Positions 2,920 to 37,332 of a DNA stretch of 64,000 nucleotides are shown piece by piece; the first letter of the stretch is position 1, and each line of letters opens with the position of its first letter. Under the pieces are notes generated by a model that saw only the letters and a list, made by a program, of their open reading frames with translations, made no database searches and was not told the origin of the DNA. Both the position numbers and the translations under genes were made by a program. This DNA comes from Lepidodermella squamata (lineage: Eukaryota > Animalia > Gastrotricha), in contig JBLDXI010000026.1 of the NCBI GenBank assembly GCA_047495785.1, positions 1,054,001 through 1,118,000 of the forward strand, read 5' to 3'.

Positions 2920-3210
2920 AACATGGCCTTCAAAAATTTGCTGGCAAATCCAGGAGTCTTCCCATATTTTCATATAAAGTTCGATCTAAGGTTCGGGACC
3001 TTCTAGGTTTCCTGAGCTTTCCAACCCCAATTTCATGTTTTTGCCCTCAAGTTTGATTAGTCCAAAATCTCTCGGCCTTAAGATATGATTCCTACTCAGT
3101 TTGAAAAGCAGAATGTTGTAACCAAAAAATTTCGAATTTTACGAAAATCGGAAAGCCGTTCAAGTATGAATATAAAACAACGCGTCCTTAATCAAGTAAT
3201 ATCCACTCCG
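2920..3210. mobile_element. Partial copy of the palindromic MITE family best seen at 47273-47748
   Basis: Shares gatctaaggttc..gacct..taggtttcctgagctttccaaccc..atttcatgttttt and the atatccactcc terminus. Confidence 0.7.
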
Positions 3211-3343
3211 TATTTTAAATCGCCTGAAGTAAGATAAAAAAGACATCTGTCCAATAAATAAACAATTCATGCGTAAAATTAGCTGTACAAGTATCAATAT
3301 TTTATTAGGTTCATTATAATTTATTAGCCATACATATATAAAA

Positions 3344-5966
3344 ATGGCCGGCTCTTTTGCCCCTCTCACATTTTCCCTCAAGCTATGCGGGCTTTACCCT
3401 AACACTTTGGCTTCAACATCAGCCAAGACGGTGGATTCGATCGATGTAGAGCGAGCCCATGTTCATCGCCTCAAGACAGACCCGTATTTTCCGGCTCAAT
3501 CAAAGCCATTTATTCCCCCAAGTACAAAATCATTGCTGGGAATCCTCTACGCAACAAGTCTGCTGATTCTGTCATGGTTCAACGCCCTTCGATATTTCAC
3601 AATTTTCACTGCCCTTCGATCGACAAAGCCTGATTATCGGTTCACCGATGTCGTCTACTGCCTGGTTATCTGCTTCTTCTACACCCAAGCTGCCGTAGTT
3701 AGGACGGTCCTATTTTCCGGCTGTTTGACAGGCAAGTGGCAAAAGATTGTCGCAGCCATCAGCCGGATAAATGATCGGCACAATGCGGAAAAAACTACGA
3801 GAAAAATTCGCGTTATAACGGCTATTTGCTGGCTGCTTTATGTGAATAATACGACGGTGTTACTGCTTGGGGTTTATTTCATGAAGGAAACATTCGGTTA
3901 CATGGCCACTCCGCTTCACATGCCGAGCGCGAATTTCGACGATCTTTGGCTCCTAGCTGCATTCATGGTCTACTTTCTCTGTAAGTTTGAATAAGGGTTT
4001 AATAATTTTTGACAAAACCATTTTTTCGAGATTTAATAAAATTAAAAAATTAACTCAGAAATACTCAAGATAAAAGTGTGTCGAGCGATCCCCCATTCAT
4101 CTCTAAATTTGGGTGGTTTTACGAATTTTACCTGATTTTTGGTGATCAACAATATTTTTGAATGAATTTGACAATTAGCGAGTAATTTGGAATTTTGAAC
4201 GCTCATTTGCTTGTTCAGACGGGATGGTATTTTGAGTTTTCAGTTTTAATCGACGTTTGGGTCGAATTTTGAAAAAAATCGTGAACAGATGGCGCACAAA
4301 AATTGAGAAAAAAACTTCTTTGCGTAGCGCATCGCGCCCTAAATTCGGCCACCTTTTGGGTTTCCCTACTTTGCCAGTCAGGTGAATTGGCAAATACCGA
4401 ATTACAGAGGAGCTCTTGGGCTATCGAATGGCGGTTGCTCAATTCCGGGCCCATCGTAGTTTCGTCCGGCCCGCGCTCGTCGGTTGCGCAATTGCGCAAT
4501 TTTCATCAAATTCAGAGCCGCGCGCGCTAATGTCAAAAGCCTAGTTTAGATTTTTTAGGCGGTTTTTATACCAAAAAATAATTCAGTCAATTCTCTATCG
4601 ATTGAATATGGGGTTCTCGCGCGAAAAAATTAAAATAAAAAAGTTTTACGCGCACCTTAGATTTTGAGCTCAATTTTATGAGCGCGCGCACTCGCTTCTC
4701 AAAATTAAAGGCGCGCGGAAACCTTCTTTGTTTAATTTTTCGCGCAAGAAACCAATATTCAATCGATAGAGAATTGTCTGAATTATTTTTCGGTATAGAA
4801 ACCGCCGAGATATTCAAAATTAGCCCTTTGACATCAGCGCGCGCGGCTCTGAATTTGATGAAAATTTCGACTTGGCGTTTTGCGCCAAGTCCACTTTTAC
4901 CCTCCAATTGCGAAACCGACGAGCGCGGGCCGGACGAAACTACGATGGGCCCGGAATTGAGCATGGCGGTTTCCGCAAGTCCGGACGATTTTACCTTGAT
5001 TTATAGCTAATTTTGTTGTCAAATTTTGTTCAAATTTTGTTTTGAATTTTCTTTATTTTCCGTCAGCCCTAATTTCCGACGCCGCCTCAGTTTTTGGTCA
5101 TCTTTTCCTGATTTCTCTCACCGTTGTTCACGCGGGTAATTTTCGCCGATTAGTCGCGAATGACCACGGAACAGACAAATTCGATCAAGTCGTGAAATCA
5201 CTCGAAGATGAGGAAGACGAAGCCCACAAACCACTTCAAGGAAATCGAATCAAATTGCATGATGATACCGATGAAAATAACTCACTTCTGAATGGAAAGC
5301 CGCCGTCTCATCGCATTCGAAAATCAATTTCCCTACCTGAAAACGGCGTCGCTGATTTGAAAGCCCGGATCGACATTCCAGATGACATTCAAGCGCCGCC
5401 TTTCAACGCTGAAAAGTTCCGATCTAGCCACCTTAAACTAGTCGTAATAGCTCGCGAGTTGGATAAAGCCGCGATGTTGGCTGTTTTCGCGGCAACTTCC
5501 TGCGGGTTCCTCTGCGTTCTCATCATCGCCTATCAGGTCACCCTTGGACAAGGCGACATGGCGTCCAAGATCATCTGGGTTGTTTGGGTGGTATTCGGCT
5601 TCTACCTCCTGCTAGCCCATTTAGTCACATCGGCAATTCTTGGCGCAGCTTCGGAGAGTGTTGAAACTGAACTGTATCACCTGCTGCCGAAACAAGTGCC
5701 GTGTTTCAAGCCGAGTGCCATGCAGTTGACGGTGTTGCTGAGCCAGGTTTCGACGCAGAAAGTTCATCTCACCCTGCTTGGCCTCATGAACCTGAGCCGG
5801 GAATGCATAATTGCGGTGAGATGATTTTTCATTAAATTTTGTGATTTTAATTCAGTATTTTTATCATCAGCTCTTTGCCGCGCTGTTGACTTATTTCCTA
5901 ATTCTTGTCGATTATACAGCGGGGGAGAATCAGCGAAATGCTACAATGACGACTGCGAAGTATTAG
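3344..5966 (+). CDS. Gustatory receptor-like (GRL/7tm_7) gene, complete
   Basis: Exons 3344-3980, 5067-5815 and 5871-5966 join in frame (phases 1 and 0). Multiple TM segments, a long hydrophilic loop and the C-terminal LLTYFLILVDY motif. Confidence 0.8.
4437..4962. mobile_element. Foldback/Mutator-like MITE in GRL intron 1
   Basis: Near-palindromic over its whole length (GCTCAATTCCGGGCCC...GGGCCCGGAATTGAGC), with an exact 9-bp TSD ATGGCGGTT at 4428-4436 and 4963-4971. Confidence 0.9.
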
Positions 5967-29429: not shown

Positions 29430-31805
29430 TCATCGCTTCAAAACCTTTGCAATAGCTGGCCAGAAAATGATCGCCCCTGTTGAAAATGAAGTGACACAAG
29501 CCACTGTTGCAACAGTAATTGGCATAGCTTGACCCGAATTTCGCCAAGTCGTCGAGTTATTGATAATCGCAACTAAAACGACCCCAGATACGGAAATACC
29601 TAAAACGTTGATTATCGCCAAAACGAATAATCGAAATTCCATAATCCAGCTACGCCGTAGCTCCTTTGTCTCGCGATTTTTCGGAATCCGCCCAGCTCGA
29701 ACGGTGACGTCATAAGCAAAGAAAGAGCCAATGATTAGGAGTAGTAGATTCGCTCCTACAAGACCGACCGCCCAAGCCATCTCAAAGTTAGCCAGCGATT
29801 GACACTGCCGAGAGACATTGATGAAATACGCATCTAAATCTTCATCGTAAGTAGGCTTCGGGTACATTTCGATCAATGAAACCTTGTAGGGCCCAATAGC
29901 TAGCATTATGGCTACAACAACCGTTTGAATGAAGAACGACACAAGTGCAGATGTAATGATAGTAGTGACATTGCCCATTTTCATGGCATCAAATAGTCGA
30001 TTATGACGATTATCAGATATCTCCTCAATTTTCATTCCACGCGAACTTTCAGCTCGGAATTTATCTAAAAACATTGTAGAGCCTATATTTCCCATAGATA
30101 CCAGATTCGATCTAAAATGATGGATGAATCCAAACAGAGAGCCATTCAGTAAGCTGAATCCTGTCACTAAGAAAATTCTCTGGGCGTAACATAATCCTGG
30201 CCTTACTTCAGGATACACTGAGAAAATTGCAGTCATGTTCAGGCAAATCAATCCTGCATTCATGAGCCTTTTCCCAATGACCAGCTTTTGCTTCGAAGAG
30301 CTCGCACGATCGCTCCGCCCAACAAGAACTTTAGTTGTGTTGAGCAGGGTTATTTCCATAACGGACAGTAACGAGGCAAAAACAGTTGTTACGACGAATA
30401 CCCAAAACGGAACGTGGTCCATCACCCTGAAGACATTAGGCTGATCTTTCAAATCCGACCAAACTGAAACATCATCCAGAAGCGTCAAATTGTGATTATC
30501 TGGATCATCAGGACTCCCATGCCCGGTGAAAATCGTTTTCCCAAATGGTTTGAACGTCCTATCTCGATCGTTGTATTGGAAAAACCATTGAGGTTCAAAA
30601 TCGAATTCTATCCTTTCGGAATATTTGACTTCCCCAGTTCGAAGGGAGGTGAAACGAATGTTTTCGGCGGCTTGTTTCACCGAGGCTAGGACAGCTTCAG
30701 GATTACGGCCGAAATCTCTCAAAGACATGTTTTTCCGTTGGAGCAGCTTCTCCCCTTCATGAAGGGACAAAATGCCCTGAAGAGCTTCGTCGAAATTTCG
30801 ATGTCGGTTTTCGTAGTCGGGTAAGCGTGACTTGTTGGTTCGACGATCGAACTCCTTCTCAAACGAGTCAAGATCGTAACCAACTGCCGTTGGGCCAAAG
30901 TTCATCAGAGCTTCCTGGGCAAACCCAACCCAAATAGACTGAGTAGCTTGTTCAGTGGCCATAGAAACCGAGCAACCTAGGGGTAGTAATGACTGATCGA
31001 TCAGTCCTATCGTCCCTGACTGGAGAATGAACAAGTATTTCGGGCCTCGAAACCCGAAGTTGTATAACGCGCATAAGTGGCGGTAAATGACAACAATTCC
31101 AGAGGTTACAATGACAAATATTCTTGCATTGGTTTTGGCTAGCAACGGAGCTGTTTCTGAATCAATAGGGTTGATGTCGTACCATAACACATTTATCCCG
31201 ACCTTAATGCTTCTGGCGTAGAAGTCATTCGCGAGATCGTAGTTTGCCGCAAGATTATTCGATAAAATTGCGATATTTTGCCATTTACCGACATTTTTTA
31301 TGAATTTTACCTGGGCAACGTTGATCATTTCAGCGGGTATCATTGTGCGAAAAATTGTTGGAAATTGCCGACGATTCCCGGTCATTAGCTGATGTGTGCA
31401 GGCATTCGTCACGTGAATCATGTTGAAACGAGCTATCAGAGGTGAGACTTTTAAGCAACCTGGTATGTAATACGGCCCTAAGACTAACGGAGCTACGTTT
31501 GACATAGACTTTTCGTTCCTTCGTAGAAATTCGAAAAATCGAGTAACGACTTGATCGCCGTTGATAGCTTCTTCGATGAATTCGAGTTGGAGTTGATAGC
31601 CGGGCAGGATATCTGGTCTGCTGTTGACTGCGTCGACAACCATTTGCATCGTAACTCGAGTGAATCGGCTGTTCCGTGGCGGTTGCAGGAAAGAACGGAG
31701 GACAGCTATGGTCAAATTATGACTTTTTGTTACATGTTGGCTCTCGGCAAAAGAAAAAACTGTTATCAAGAAAGGAAGCAAAGCTTTCAACATGCAGCGT
31801 GACAT
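29430..31805 (-). CDS. Class C GPCR, GABA-B receptor-like, intronless, 791 aa
   Basis: Signal peptide, Venus-flytrap motifs (VNSRPDILPGYQLQL, FPTIFRT, NARIFV), seven TM segments and no Cys-rich linker. Confidence 0.85.
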   Translation of the reverse strand: MSRCMLKALLPFLITVFSFAESQHVTKSHNLTIAVLRSFLQPPRNSRFTRVTMQMVVDAVNSRPDILPGYQLQLEFIEEAINGDQVVTRFFEFLRRNEKSMSNVAPLVLGPYYIPGCLKVSPLIARFNMIHVTNACTHQLMTGNRRQFPTIFRTMIPAEMINVAQVKFIKNVGKWQNIAILSNNLAANYDLANDFYARSIKVGINVLWYDINPIDSETAPLLAKTNARIFVIVTSGIVVIYRHLCALYNFGFRGPKYLFILQSGTIGLIDQSLLPLGCSVSMATEQATQSIWVGFAQEALMNFGPTAVGYDLDSFEKEFDRRTNKSRLPDYENRHRNFDEALQGILSLHEGEKLLQRKNMSLRDFGRNPEAVLASVKQAAENIRFTSLRTGEVKYSERIEFDFEPQWFFQYNDRDRTFKPFGKTIFTGHGSPDDPDNHNLTLLDDVSVWSDLKDQPNVFRVMDHVPFWVFVVTTVFASLLSVMEITLLNTTKVLVGRSDRASSSKQKLVIGKRLMNAGLICLNMTAIFSVYPEVRPGLCYAQRIFLVTGFSLLNGSLFGFIHHFRSNLVSMGNIGSTMFLDKFRAESSRGMKIEEISDNRHNRLFDAMKMGNVTTIITSALVSFFIQTVVVAIMLAIGPYKVSLIEMYPKPTYDEDLDAYFINVSRQCQSLANFEMAWAVGLVGANLLLLIIGSFFAYDVTVRAGRIPKNRETKELRRSWIMEFRLFVLAIINVLGISVSGVVLVAIINNSTTWRNSGQAMPITVATVACVTSFSTGAIIFWPAIAKVLKR

Positions 31806-32197
31806 GAGAAGAGATTTATTTAGTAAGAATCGTTTTGAACTATATCATCTTAGGGATTGAATAGCCAGCATGTTCACCTCCTTCACAAAATTGTGAAACA
31901 GATACGGTGCTCAGTCACGTAATGAAAAGATAGATGGCTTATTTTCAATTTAAATGTTTGTAGGTTTTTTATAATAGCATAAAGAAAATCGGTTTATTTT
32001 TTTTGTCTTGTACGCGTTAAATGATTCATGATTTCTTTTTCGCCCTATGAAGAGCAGTTAGAAGTTATATACCAAAGGAAAATACACATCCGACAAGAGA
32101 GGGAAAATAAATTAAAGCAAAGCAGAATTCTGATTTGGACTCTCCGAGACTAAACTGCCATCCTCTGAGTGAATGAATGGTCTTCAGAGCATCAATC

Positions 32198-34778
32198 CTA
32201 ACTGTTGATTGCTGCAGCCGTGTAGATATGAATGATCGTGAATCCAGAGAGAGCAACTGCTACGGCGAACACGTCCATCACTCGAATGAAGCTCATACGA
32301 TTCTTCTTAGTATTGGTTCTCGTTTGATTCTCGTTTGATGAACTGTCCGTTGGAGAAACCTGGTTTACAGGTAAGAGGTAACTTGATCGGATGCTCGACA
32401 TTCGATCACTGATTTTATCGCTTGAATCTTCCTCACGAGCTGAGTCAGGTTTATGCCTCTCCTCGGGTGATTCTTTCGTATTCACCCATGTATCGCTGAC
32501 CCAAACAGCTACGATTTGGTAGATCAAAGTTGCCGTGCAGAGCCATGATAAGGAATTAACGTAATCAGCCATGAGAACACTATCAGATGTAACCGGTATC
32601 TGTCCAGCTGTCCCGGACTGAGCGACAGTCATAGCGACCAGAATCGTCACTGAAAACGCAGGCCGGTCTGTCACAGTCGGTGGCATGAGGAAAGTTGCTA
32701 TTTCAATGACTGTCAGGAGAATCGTAGGCAGGGCGTAGTTCAAAACATGGTAAGACGGATTTCGCCGCAATGTTACAACAAAATGGACTGCGCTTACGTT
32801 GGAGCCACCATATCGCAACACACTGCTAGAAACACGTCTATCAACGTAATGCCATTGATCACTTTTCCTTTCGCTTGAAACAGCTGGCCAGTAAAAGGCC
32901 GCATCCTTGAACATGACTACATCCACCGAGCGAATCAACGAAAAAGTGAACAAACACGTCTGAGAGTCGAAGGGATATTTTCTCAGATCCAAGGAACATG
33001 ACGACGAGAAAGATCCGCCCATAATCCAGTAAAAGGTCATGGTGCGATTTGGGGAATTTGGGTCAGTGTAAATTGTAGCCGTAATATCCTCACCGAAATC
33101 CTTGTTATCCCTCATATAAATATCCGCAAATTGTGCTGTCTCCAGAAACATGTAAAGCGGTGCCCAGACTTGATCACTTTGGGTAATGTAAAGCCTTTCC
33201 AATGACGGCCGAGCTGATAACAAAGCATCAGTTGTGTTTTTAGGGCAGGTTGTTATTTCCCAAGTTAGAAGCATTTGCCCCGAAACGGTGATTGTTTCAT
33301 CCACCGTCGAAATTCCTTTCATAGCTTTGACGTTGAAAGCTGGTCGGATGTAAGTCACAGCTGAGGTGCTCGAAGGCGGAGGGGCGGCTTGATTACTCGA
33401 AAAGTCGCTGCATTCACTGAGAACTCCCGAGCTGGTAGCTACATCCTTGCCGCCTGTATCAGCTAGAGTTGTAGGGAAGAAGTCCTGTTGCATTTGCTGT
33501 GACGAAGAATGTTGTAGAGATGTGATTTGCTGAGATCCTGCCGTTGAAGGCGCGGCTGTCGTAGTCGCTGTCTTTCAGGGGTTAAACAAGCGTTTAATCT
33601 AAACTCTCCGCTGAAACTCAACTTACCTGGGTAGTCGTGGTAGCAACAACTGGCGGTGGAGTTGTAGTCGTCGTAGTAGGTGGCGGGGCTGTCGTAGTAG
33701 TCGTAGTTGCGACAGTGGTATTTACTTTCACCGTAGTCGCTGCTTTAGTCGTGGGTGTTGTCAGCATCGTTGAACAATCTACGCCAGTGAACGATGAAGT
33801 GCAAGTGCATGTATTCGGTGCAACGCATGTCCCGCCGTTCTTGCAAGGCACTGAACAATCTGGGATCGAGCAATCACTACCTATCCATCCTGATGCGCAA
33901 GTACAAACATTTGTAGACCAGCAGCTGCCGCCGTTTTTACACGACGGCGAGCAATAGCAAGATGATCCTATTGACGAATTGATATCTCCCGTGCAATTAT
34001 TCGAGCATCCACTAGGGCATGTTATATTCCCGAAATTCGAACACATATACCAGTAATCCCACATTTGGTTGACTGATAGAGGTACTCCAAAGACGGCAGG
34101 GCAGGCTAAACTCGCATTACTCCACACGCTATCTCCTGGACTCCAGAACAAGTTAAGTGACGCATCACTGAACGCCGACCCGCCTGTTAACGTTTTGTTC
34201 AATTTCAGATCGTTGTTGCAAAATAAAGACATCATCTGTGACGTAGCGTTCCAAGTCACCACGACAGATGTCCATGAATTACCATTATAAGGGTGACATG
34301 TCATATTCGCAAATAGAACAGCAGTAGTAGCATCTGAACGGAAGGAAAATAGCATCGCTGAGTTAGTTACTCCCGTTCTGAGCACTTGCACTGAGCCAGT
34401 GGAGTTGGCGAACCCGATTGCGGTTCCCCAATTGTTGTTTATAGTTTTGACAAATACTGCCAACGACCATGAATCTGTTGAATTGAATCGGAGCTTATTA
34501 GAGTCATATTTGATGTAATTTCCGCTAGCTCCCGGCAACATATAAGCTGAGCTCGGTAACATATCAGGTCCCGCAACCCAATATCCAGGATTAGCCGAGT
34601 CACTCACAACAGTCGCATTAAATTTGTTCGGCGAAACATCAGTAAATCCGAAAACGTTGGATAGGGGAGCGAAAAATGTCATATTTGGCGCAAGTGAATC
34701 ATATTTCAGCCGAAAGTCCTGTCCATTTATCAATCCGAGAGAGCCAACTATTAGCACGAAGATGGTTTCCAAATCCAT
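32198..34778 (-). CDS. Cys-loop ligand-gated ion channel subunit with N-terminal LamG/ConA-like domain, EGF repeats and Thr-rich stalk (~841 aa)
   Basis: Exon 34778-33627, 55-nt phase-0 intron 33626-33572 (GTAAGT...AAG), exon 33571-32198 in frame. Cys-loop CSLDLRKYPFDSQTC, pre-M1 LRRNPSY, four TMs; EGF motifs CKNGGSC and CKNGGTC. Confidence 0.8.
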
Positions 34779-36190
34779 TTCAAATATTGCTCAGACGTGA
34801 GCTTCATCCATCGTTTATGATCAGCTACTTCTATTTTGCATCGCTCTCTGCTTATCTTTTATTTAATACAGAGTCGCGGTTCCATGGGACCGCAAAAAAC
34901 AAAGCGGGAGCAGAGGAGCGAAGTATTCAATAGGAAAAACAGCTGTTCAATGTTCGATCAAGGCTTTAGGACCGATAGTGCGATTTTCTCGAGGTGTTAA
35001 TAATTGATGAAACTGCTGGCTACCAGCGTTGATCGATCGCAGCTTACCATCCAGACAAAAATGTCTAAAAATGACAATGCAGGCATATTCTCTGAACATG
35101 CTTTCTGCAAAATAAAGCTGAGAAGAGACCGAACTACAGTCAACTTCGCTCTTGAGAATTTCCGCCTTATTGTTGGATCGTTTCTGAATTTCCGAGCATA
35201 AAAAGTTGATTTTACAAATTAAAGAGGTAGGACGTCAAAACAGCGAATGCGCAGAACAGCGAAACCGACATAACAGCGAAAGCGACAAAACAACGAAAAA
35301 TCCTCCCCAAAATGATGTGTAATGTGCGATATTAAAATCGCTGTTATATGTCGCAAATTAGATTTTTCGCTGTTTTGCCGCGTTCGCTGTTTCGGGTATT
35401 CGCTGTCATGGCGGTCTCCATTAAAGAAGCAGAGGAGTAAAAATAGATTCTTTAATTTAGCTAGGAAACTATTGTGCATTCAAGTGAAACGGGTCTTTGA
35501 ATGTTCCTGTATCCTCAGTCCTCAGGCAACTGAAGCCGCTTCTGCTACTAATCATATTCCCATTCTTGAAGTTTCCAGCAAACGTGGCCTCGAGATGAAG
35601 CCGGGTGATTTTAGTCGTACATTTTTGGCTGTCGAATGAAATTAGTCACTGCCTGACTATTTCTCACCCGTTTTGGTGGTCTCAGGTTCCCATTTCATCA
35701 GAAAGTACTTCGAGTTCCTCCATGCTCTTCGAGAACCGTCAGAGAATAAAAAGTCGCGAAAACCTCACATAGCGAACAGATGAGTTCGATTATCTCAAAT
35801 TTCATTTACCCAGGCAAGCGTGGAAACATGTCTGTTATAAACCTCACTAGGCCACGTATATCCGATCTGAAAGTAGAAATGCACTTTGTAGTGAGATTAT
35901 TACACCCATGGGCGCGAAAATAAGTCAATATTATACGGTGATTAACGACTTTCCTACGCTATTGTGACCCATATACTTTCCAAATAAAAAAATAAAGCTT
36001 GTATTAGGTATGCCCCGACAACAACTTGACGAAATAATCGATGGGTGGTAATCAACTCAAGCGGGAATATCATCAACTAATTTGTATTTTTATCGCGCAC
36101 TGCTTCCGCAAATTACGTTAGTCCTGGCGACTTTCGCGCTAAGGGTATTCAGTAAAGAATATAGCAAGGTTGAAAGTACATAAAACCACC

Positions 36191-37332
36191 ATGAATTCAA
36201 CAAGCAACAATTCACTTTCAAGCCAATGCCCTATTGAAATTCCGGATTACTCAGAGGTTGTAGTAGCGACATTCGGATACATCCTACCAGCTCTCAATGT
36301 CATCGCAGCTTCTGGCAATGCTATCAGTGTCGTCATTCTTCGCGATACGCAGACTTTCAAATCGCCGACATACGTTTACTTGACATTTCTAGCTGTGATG
36401 CAAGGTCTAGCACTGCTCGGTACGGGTATCTTCTTCTTCCTACGAGTCGCCTTGAAGAACAGTGCCTGGGCACCGCGCCTCATAGCTTATTTCGTGTGGC
36501 CAGTCTTCAATTTGGCATGCACTCAATCTGTTGTATTCACCCTAGCTTTCAGCATAGAGCGATTCATTTTCATTACCAGGAATAAGCTGCCTTCAAGGAA
36601 GGGATCCTTAATGACTGAACTCCGCCACAAAACATTGAGGAATTGTGTTATTCTAATGATGATTGTTACAGTACTCAATTTCCCGCGAATGATGGCATAT
36701 GGAAGCCCAACGAACAAGTGTCGGCAAATTGACGCCTACTCGAATGACAATCATTATTCTTTTCATTATGCGTTTTTCATCTATTCCATCGTTCGATTCT
36801 TTGTCTACAACGTTGGTAAGCTTATATTTTTCGTATTGCATGCCAGTTTTCGAGTTTCTACGTCTAATTAGGATGTAACTTCCTGTTAATTGTTACCAAT
36901 GCCCTGCTATCCTATACTGTTTATCGATCGAAAAAACGAAGTCAGGATAACGGCCAACCTAATCTGAGACAAAGTCATGCTCTGACGTTAACACTCATTG
37001 CAGCAACATCGGCTACACTCTTCGGAGAAATTCCAGTATGTCATTGCTTGATTGGAGTAAATTCAACTTCATTATGCTTTCAGGTGTCGATGTTCAACCC
37101 GATCACAGATCATTTGATTTGGGATAGATTCGGTTTGATGAGTACCGAATCTTTTGAGATGGCAGAGCGTGCAGCTAATATTGCTTGCTTCATCGAATAT
37201 AGCTCGAATTTCTGCATTTACTTCATAGGCGACCGCAATTTTCGCCGCAAGTGCTGCGCCATGTTTATGACTAAAAAATCTCAGGAAGAATCAAAGTTCA
37301 TTGAAAAAGTTGACTTGTCCGCTAGTATCTAG
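36191..37332 (+). CDS. Class A (rhodopsin-family) GPCR, peptide-receptor-like
   Basis: Exons 36191-36815, 36872-37035 and 37084-37332; GN in TM1, YLTFLA, SIERF, NFCIY..G..NFR. Confidence 0.85.

Follow-up and report, generated by a model that had tools for sequence, protein, structure and literature searches.

The locus lies on the minus strand of a 64,000-nt window of the Lepidodermella squamata genome assembly (GCA_047495785.1, contig JBLDXI010000026.1, positions 1,054,001 to 1,118,000), where two intact open reading frames (ORFs) follow one another: ORF1 (34778-33618, 386 amino acids (aa)) and ORF2 (33493-32198, 431 aa). A preliminary description of the window, made from the sequence alone, had proposed that both ORFs fuse through a 55-nt phase-0 GT-AG intron (33626-33572) into a protein of ~841 aa. 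Indeed, joining the ORFs in this way gave 841 codons and a single terminal stop. The predicted product begins with a signal peptide, followed in order by a Laminin_G_3 domain, two EGF_2 domains, a Thr/Pro stalk, an element preceding the ligand-binding domain (the pre-LBD element), the Cys-loop ligand-binding domain (LBD) itself and the transmembrane helices M1-M4 (Table 1). The fused architecture of head and channel is probable, and we hold with good confidence that some in-frame splice joins the two ORFs, including the case in which a second spliced form is also made. The reading favoured here, with moderate confidence, is that of a single two-exon gene (34778-32198) encoding an 841-aa head-bearing Cys-loop subunit whose heads would serve in anchoring or recognition.

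ORF2 encodes an intact pentameric-channel subunit. Among the Pfam domains that the preliminary description had led us to expect, Neur_chan_LBD was found in ORF2 at 36 bits (cutoff 26, E 6e-9) and Laminin_G_3 and EGF_2 also scored above their cutoffs, with only Neur_chan_memb falling below its own (21 bits, cutoff 28.1). Four transmembrane helices were nevertheless present in an AlphaFold2 (AF2) model of the 457-aa exon-2 product, built with a 46-sequence alignment (predicted local distance difference test score (pLDDT) 85, predicted template modelling score 0.78); hydropathy agreed, with peaks at M1, M3 and M4, and M1-M3 aligned to those of the alpha7 nicotinic acetylcholine receptor (nAChR). 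The channel aligned to human alpha7 nAChR with an E value of 6e-14 and was 16-25% identical to animal cation-type receptors. The top Foldseek matches of the model were alpha7, 5-HT3A and ACR-23 (E 1e-19 to alpha7 nAChR), and muscle nAChR was also listed by both phmmer and Foldseek. The Cys-loop CSLDLRKYPFDSQTC (fused aa 576-590) contains two Cys with C-x13-C spacing and the Pro of the [FY]PFD motif, and the corresponding C192, P200 and C206 of the exon-2 product were invariant in the 46-sequence alignment.

Cation channels of this superfamily carry Glu or Asp at position -1' of M2 and lack the -2' Pro found in anion channels. In the alpha7 alignment M2 of the gene has T at -2', D at -1', R at 0', T at 6' and V at 9', with IPVTSDSV directly behind it, and the clade to which the gene belongs (see below) keeps D/E at -1', Arg at 0' and, behind M2, the motif P-x-TS. 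Judged by these residues, the channel is probably cation-selective and alpha7/5-HT3-like. The loop-B Trp is absent (alpha7 FGSWSYGG aligns to TFSLIRSVD), as is the vicinal Cys pair of loop C (alpha7 YECCKEPYPDV aligns to Y--GGSNVSAV). Because both features are missing, acetylcholine is an unlikely agonist; the subunit is probably non-cholinergic and should not be filed as an acetylcholine receptor. The M3-M4 loop is the longest in the clade.

The channel ORF does not appear to be complete at its N-terminus. It had been stated previously that ORF1 has a signal peptide and no membrane anchor, and that the channel ORF has no signal peptide. Both statements agreed with hydropathy analysis: ORF1 contains a single, N-terminal hydrophobic segment, and no hydrophobic stretch was detected in the first 90 residues of ORF2 or in fused residues 385-500 (maximum Kyte-Doolittle (KD) value 0.54). 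The ORF2 product alone, lacking such a stretch in its first 90 residues, would be unable to insert with the LBD outside the cell. The model of the exon-2 product led in the same direction. Residues 1-19, corresponding to the stalk, were disordered (pLDDT below 50), order began at about residue 20, and a helix at residues 21-31 spanned the first Met (position 27, ATG at 33493); pLDDT then climbed from 78 to 96 across the pre-LBD element, and the beta-sandwich LBD was above 90. Initiation at the first Met of ORF2 would truncate this structured, conserved element, which argues that coding begins upstream.

The pre-LBD element is defined by the motif ...FP...T..LxxC-x-D/H-F...APP...P.I..., common to all 17 aligned clade members. 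The same 17 members contain two Cys outside the Cys-loop, Cys438 (33410-33412, in the motif C-x-D-F...APP) and Cys493 (33245-33247, 'TTC'). This conservation suggests a clade-specific staple disulfide between Cys438 and Cys493, which may fix the end of the stalk onto the LBD.

At the proposed junction, the GTAAGT donor, which agrees with the consensus, starts at 33626, immediately after complete codon 384 of ORF1, and the acceptor AG ends at 33572. The intron holds an in-frame TGA (33620-33618) that terminates ORF1, and the ORF2 frame is shut by a second intronic TGA (33577-33575) and is open from 33574. The 26 codons from the acceptor to the first ATG of ORF2 are open and Thr-rich and read TATTTAAPSTAGSQQITSLQHSSSQQ. 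As described earlier, the Thr-rich run spans the junction (...ATTTTQ/TATTTAAPS..., the slash marking the join). A 17-nt repeat, ACTACGACAGCC(C/G)CGCC, was found in addition: it occurs once in each exon, at 33549-33565 and 33682-33698 (16 of 17 positions identical), and is read in one and the same codon phase. Coding of the stalk type is thus present 5' of the first Met of ORF2, where it would be reachable only by translation from exon 1.

Candidate introns of 40-74 nt were collected from the 64-kb window; each had to begin with a GTRAG donor and to connect, in frame, the long open frames flanking it. Twelve donors had a single solution, with lengths of 40-73 nt and a median of 55 nt, in keeping with the earlier statement that 55 nt is the typical intron size here. 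A second in-frame pairing at the head/channel junction, GTTGAG at 33622 with a CAG ending at 33568, would likewise remove 55 nt and would change two junction residues; GTTGAG departs from the GTRAG pattern, to which every other donor of the window conforms. Introns of 97 or 130 nt would also keep the frame, but were judged less likely, as they would delete stalk-like coding and exceed the usual intron size. The exact junction is the weakest point of the gene model. The position of the putative intron at the head/channel boundary is consistent with exon shuffling.

To find other examples of the architecture, the channel ORF was searched against 1.84 billion representative proteins, which returned 19 with E values of 1e-30 or below. 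P0003, the closest relative, was 42% identical, and the nearest relatives (27-42%) often had the channel at the C-terminal end behind 200-766 extra residues. Matches confined to the C-terminus of a long protein were P0004 (743 aa), P0005 (592), P0006 (702), P0009 (914), P0010 (760), P0014 (916), P0018 (797) and P0019 (1099), all of them unnamed and from ENA metagenome assemblies. All of these except P0005 resembled the gene in having 27-36% channel identity, the same pre-LBD motif, a long head and an S/T/P linker. Signal-peptide-like starts were seen in the heads of P0004, P0006, P0009, P0010, P0014 and P0019, and several carried an S/T/P-rich linker before the LBD. By Pfam, the P0004 head contains an EGF_2 and that of P0019 a pair of Laminin_G_3 domains (E 6e-16); for P0009 and P0010 the Laminin_G_3 matches were weak. 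On their own contigs P0004, P0019 and P0010 were single uninterrupted ORFs of 744, 1100 and 761 codons, respectively; unlike the gene, the head-bearing relatives pass from head to channel with no intervening intron.

When 61 channel cores were placed in a maximum-likelihood tree, the gene fell in a 15-member clade (Shimodaira-Hasegawa approximate likelihood ratio test support 98), eight other members of which have heads of 259-766 residues; the remaining members were mostly N-terminally cut ORFs. The preliminary description had called for a search for other head-plus-channel proteins, and these clade members, with heads in continuous ORFs, are such examples. The heads of the relatives could not be aligned to that of the gene apart from EGF, and EGF alone was matched when the head was compared by local phmmer with all fetched relatives. 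Unalignable heads on a conserved core point to repeated domain shuffling. Long named matches from molluscs (bivalves), Macrostomum and a fish were rejected as head fusions, being merged tandem channel models with 2-4 LBDs. A search with the 457-aa exon-2 product gave no match with an E value of 1e-20 or less, probably because word sampling was dominated by the Thr-rich linker.

At the level of sequence, head and channel in one polypeptide are therefore demonstrated for the clade, not for the copy studied here. The earlier claim of one gene, a Cys-loop subunit with a LamG/ConA-like domain, EGF and a mucin stalk, stood as regards architecture, through the head-bearing single-ORF relatives, the need of ORF2 for an upstream signal peptide and the coding upstream of the ORF2 ATG; for the gene's own copy it is probable.

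The head itself was characterized by profile and composition. Laminin_G_3 (PF13385) was matched in ORF1 with E 1.2e-6 over profile positions 4-148 of 151, and the nearest ESM-Atlas clusters were without exception Laminin_G_3 (0.89), no more than a lead. EGF_2 was matched in two stretches at 27 bits (cutoff 22.1), together with EGF_TEN (E 3.5e-7); the two EGFs, at aa 276-303 and 308-335, both have the six-Cys pattern in the form C-x3-C-x5-C-x5-C-x-C-x8-C, and the EGF part was 40-43% identical to the EGF of P0004. N-glycosylation sequons were concentrated in the head (11 of the 16 in the whole protein). In the stalk the S+T+P fraction was 0.50-0.77 per 30-residue block, and its exon-1 part contains an 18-nt unit repeated at 33-nt spacing. 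The Thr/Pro stalk comprises roughly 65 residues, and about 70 disordered Thr/Pro/Ser-rich residues separate the last EGF Cys (335) from the start of order (~404).

Table 1. Features of the head/channel locus, in window coordinates and in the order of transcription.
Feature	Position	Strand	Basis
Start codon and signal peptide, aa 1-20, MDLETIFVLIVGSLGLINGQ	34719-34778	-	Sole hydrophobic segment of ORF1, KD 1.51 over residues 1-19
Laminin_G_3 / concanavalin-A-like domain, aa 86-237	34068-34523	-	Pfam PF13385
Cys-rich segment, then two tandem compact EGF_2, aa 246-335	33774-34043	-	Pfam EGF_2 and Cys positions
Thr/Pro-rich mucin-like stalk, exon-1 part, aa 337-384	33627-33770	-	S+T+P fraction
Putative 55-nt phase-0 intron, donor GTAAGT, acceptor AAAG	33572-33626	-	Sequence, in-frame join
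Stalk, exon-2 part, fused aa 385-403, TATTTAAPSTAGSQQITSL, 5' of first ORF2 ATG	33515-33571	-	Thr-rich in ORF2 frame, repeat
Clade-specific structured pre-LBD element with helices and Cys438, fused aa 404-448	33380-33514	-	Clade alignment and model
Cys-loop ligand-binding (extracellular) domain; Cys-loop CSLDLRKYPFDSQTC at 32954-32998	32759-33379	-	Pfam, alpha7 alignment, model
Transmembrane helices M1-M3; M2 at 32600-32668	32480-32758	-	alpha7 alignment and model helices 272-295, 302-324, 333-364
Cytoplasmic M3-M4 loop, ~57 aa	32309-32479	-	Low pLDDT with one short helix; clade alignment
M4 helix, C-terminus, stop codon 32198-32200	32198-32308	-	KD 2.02 for VMDVFAVAVALSGFTIIHI; model helix 422-456, pLDDT 94-98
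Candidate polyadenylation signal AATAAA, ~200 nt 3' of stop	31993-31998	-	Read from sequence

Only two public sequencing runs cover the locus, neither of them recorded as RNA; one (X1) was only guessed to be RNA and the other (X2) was DNA-like. In X2 a single 2074-nt contig (31706-33779) was identical to the window from the channel exon through the intron into the stalk, which confirms the assembly and is silent on splicing. The possibility that the locus is a decaying duplicate or an assembly artefact, in which the ORFs adjoin through a lost frame or a contig misjoin, is very improbable in view of this independent contig; furthermore, the two ORFs are long and unbroken, and the changes in the head exon include no stops and an excess of synonymous ones. 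The last point came from a second version of the head exon in X2, either another haplotype or another copy, 12-15% divergent in 33780-33866, 34012-34079 and 34617-34706, which differs by 33 substitutions (12 synonymous and 14 non-synonymous codons), has no stops, keeps the frame and all Cys, and is identical to the window across 31706-33779. The retention of frame and Cys in this copy was counted as support for a single fused gene. Its divergent patches are possibly due to patchy diversification of the head or to gene conversion between paralogues.

In X1, depth was 5-24 over 31846-33709 and 0-1.5 over 33710-34513, with nothing upstream. This pattern fits equally a 3'-biased transcript running through the junction and uneven DNA cover, and points neither way. 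Eight joints were also found in X1 within 31949-34481, all of the 'opposite strands' type, with spacings of 84-116 nt; the two that straddle the putative intron were spaced at 158 and 159 nt, 55-59 nt wider than the other six. The wider joints could reflect a spliced template; they were given no weight here.

Several observations weigh against the single-gene reading, and the first group concerns the splice. Among the 12 candidate introns the acceptors were TAG (7), CAG (2), GAG (2) and AAG (1), and the sole, atypical AAG is that of the head/channel junction. A CAG ending at 33568, only 4 nt downstream, looks the stronger acceptor; paired with the GTAAGT donor it would lengthen the intron to 59 nt and shift the reading frame into a stop at residue 418. 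In X1 no skip of the 55 nt was found, and cover dropped about tenfold upstream of 33710, inside exon 1. These points would be explained if the locus made two products: with the intron kept, or the CAG at 33568 used, the ORF1 product would be a LamG-EGF-mucin glycoprotein (386 or 418 aa) that is secreted and has no anchor, and the channel would be untranslated or served by an unrecognised exon. The low X1 cover over most of exon 1 would also suit this explanation, and further in its favour are an ATTAAA within the intron and a TTTAAC that lies 13 nt before the AG of another intron of the window, as it does before the CAG at 33568. It is nonetheless unlikely, because the channel ORF is intact with every clade-conserved residue and has no signal peptide, and only 125 nt lie between the ORF1 stop and the ORF2 ATG, which leaves no room for one. 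The stalk-like coding and structured helix upstream of the ORF2 ATG, and the eight clade relatives with head and channel in one ORF, also speak against it.

The same two AGs, within 4 nt of each other and served by one donor, would permit both forms to be made. Use of the AAAG would give the full-length subunit, and use of the ACAG, out of frame and followed by a stop 34 codons later, would give a frame-shifted, secreted head-only protein that could act as a soluble competitor or decoy. We regard this as doubtful: no transcript of either kind was found, and a frame-shifted isoform would be equally explicable as splicing noise.

The second group of contrary observations concerns the head and its distribution. 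The LamG assignment is one Pfam match barely above threshold (29.2 bits, cutoff 27.6), and a single-sequence AF2 model of the head had a pLDDT of 32, leaving the fold unconfirmed. A protein homology search with the LamG part gave no match, and one with the whole head gave two EGF matches only. Searches of the head against PDB (phmmer) and NCBIfam were likewise without match, and scans of metagenome contigs with the head and with the channel as queries, made in search of orthologues in which to test conservation of the intron, were blank. Within the clade, P0007 is headless, with a signal peptide directly before the channel. P0003, the closest relative, has no signal peptide, and no LamG, EGF or otherwise recognisable head ORF was found in the AT-rich 600 nt upstream of it. 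The P0003 regions correspond to 5838-7055 of L003 and 5270-6475 of L002; the N-terminal exon or exons were not found. After these points are set against the evidence above, the single two-exon gene remains the reading favoured.

The locus has receptor genes for neighbours, in which the window is rich. A single-exon gene of 791 codons (29430-31805, minus), 392 nt downstream on the same strand, encodes an ANF_receptor LBD of the class-C G-protein-coupled receptor (GPCR) type followed by hydrophobic helices. On the plus strand, 36170-36871 contains an exon of a rhodopsin-type GPCR (7tm_1, E 6e-6) and, after it, a candidate intron of 56 nt (36816-36871), and 5042-5824 a gustatory-receptor-like ORF (7tm_7, E 1.5e-7). 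Neither an Rfam match nor a housekeeping gene of informative value was found in the window. About 400 nt upstream of the start codon of the head/channel gene, 35184-35451 is a high-copy repeat, where X2 depth reached 3000-3900 against flanks of ~120, with many loose ends and an 85-nt replaced segment.

The channel portion of the predicted protein is of a familiar type. It shares with nAChR alpha7, 5-HT3A and the Caenorhabditis elegans receptors ACR-23 and DEG-3/DES-2 the beta-sandwich LBD, the C-x13-C Cys-loop with YPFD, M1-M4, an M2 with an acidic -1' and basic 0' residue, and P-x-TSD-SV behind M2. It differs from these receptors in that the clade-specific pre-LBD element, with its own Cys pair, replaces a plain N-terminal helix, and in its ~400 extra N-terminal residues (Laminin_G_3, EGF and stalk), which those receptors lack.

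For such N-terminal additions the preliminary description had cited prokaryotic channels, DeCLIC in particular, as the main examples, and this account of the literature proved accurate: DeCLIC and prokaryotic ligand-gated ion channels of the pentameric type (pLGICs) are the only precedent for N-terminal domains that the literature on channels names (PMC9897478). A DeCLIC preprint of 2026 similarly states that prokaryotic pLGICs can have an N-terminal domain and that eukaryotic ones add an intracellular domain. DeCLIC is a pentameric-channel subunit with extra beta-rich jelly-roll N-terminal domains in the same polypeptide; the gene would share this layout if the 55-nt intron is spliced as proposed, the jelly-roll fold of its head being predicted from Pfam. 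Extra N-terminal domains within one chain are seen outright in the eight clade relatives with continuous ORFs. DeCLIC differs in being bacterial, in having a Pro-loop without the Cys pair, and in that its two lobes lie directly against the extracellular domain, where they modulate gating (PMC9897478). The gene, in contrast, encodes an animal Cys-loop channel with a Laminin_G_3 and EGF head on a long disordered stalk, and no sequence relation was found between the heads; it is analogous to DeCLIC and not a member of that group. An inventory of the superfamily published in 2016 removed 'extraneous domains' ahead of its analysis and remarks that links to other domains are known only at the genome level (PMC4795631). 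Full-text searches turned up no paper that describes a eukaryotic Cys-loop receptor with a head of LamG, lectin or EGF type.

Two eukaryotic systems outside the superfamily offer partial likenesses. Ionotropic glutamate receptors (iGluRs) are ligand-gated channels with a built-in distal domain, the amino-terminal domain, which serves assembly, modulation and trans-synaptic contacts, a parallel that PMC9897478 draws. They belong to an unrelated channel superfamily and fold, and their amino-terminal domains are closely packed on the LBD layer, without a mucin stalk. Neurexin-type ectodomains and agrin present a LamG-type domain, EGF and a glycosylated stalk at the membrane, and they organise or cluster synaptic receptors. 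Here the likeness is of layout only: no sequence similarity to neurexin or agrin was detected, the gene matches Laminin_G_3 and not Laminin_G_1/2, and its anchor is a whole channel where neurexin has a single helix with a cytoplasmic PDZ-binding tail.

Taken together, the favoured reading predicts an 841-aa pLGIC subunit that carries, behind its signal peptide, a Laminin_G_3 domain with heavy N-glycosylation, then a Cys-rich segment with two EGFs and a presumably O-glycosylated stalk. The subunit would belong to a lineage-specific, nicotinic/5-HT3-like clade in which variable N-terminal heads would be the rule, swapped by domain shuffling. Mucin-like O-glycosylation would turn the ~70 residues into a semi-rigid spacer with an estimated length of roughly 15-20 nm. 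If five subunits assemble, five heads would be displayed on flexible stalks, perhaps 15-20 nm above the pore module. The heads would bind an extracellular partner (a glycan, the matrix or another cell surface), thereby positioning, clustering or retaining the channel, which would be gated at its own divergent, non-cholinergic site.

Anchoring or recognition is favoured over direct gating because ~70 disordered residues part the head from the structured channel. The anchoring role is proposed by analogy with neurexin ectodomains; self-clustering, contact sensing and tether gating, the functions suggested for the head in the preliminary description, likewise stand as proposals. The fusion might also be real and the head a sensor, such that a glycan or surface ligand, or pull on the stalk, would gate the channel, making it a contact- or glycan-gated ionotropic receptor. 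The orthosteric site, without the loop-B Trp and loop-C Cys pair, makes a classical transmitter unlikely; the stalk ends in a conserved, structured and probably disulfide-stapled element atop the LBD; and heads that vary on a conserved core are as expected if heads set specificity. Rigid coupling of the DeCLIC type (PMC9897478) is, however, argued against by the disordered Ser/Thr/Pro-rich residues, and headless members of the clade exist, so that a sensory head is given a rather low probability. It is similarly improbable, if conceivable, that the whole clade has swapped transmitter sensing for interchangeable lectin or adhesion heads, and thus comprises ionotropic receptors for surfaces, glycans or matrix that are gated by contact, particles or force; the gene would then be the Laminin_G_3 and EGF specificity variant.

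Reviews and structural papers place N-terminal accessory domains of pLGICs only in prokaryotes. If the gene is real as a fusion, it would represent an animal Cys-loop receptor with a large adhesion- or lectin-type ectodomain, in a clade with varied heads, to which this copy adds a distinct head type (Laminin_G_3 and EGF) and an intron at the head/channel boundary. The superfamily would then have undergone modular elaboration like that of the glutamate receptors. The members of the clade would serve as ready-made constructs with which to study the effect of distal domains on the localisation or modulation of these channels, and would point to an unexplored class of receptors in a little-studied invertebrate lineage.

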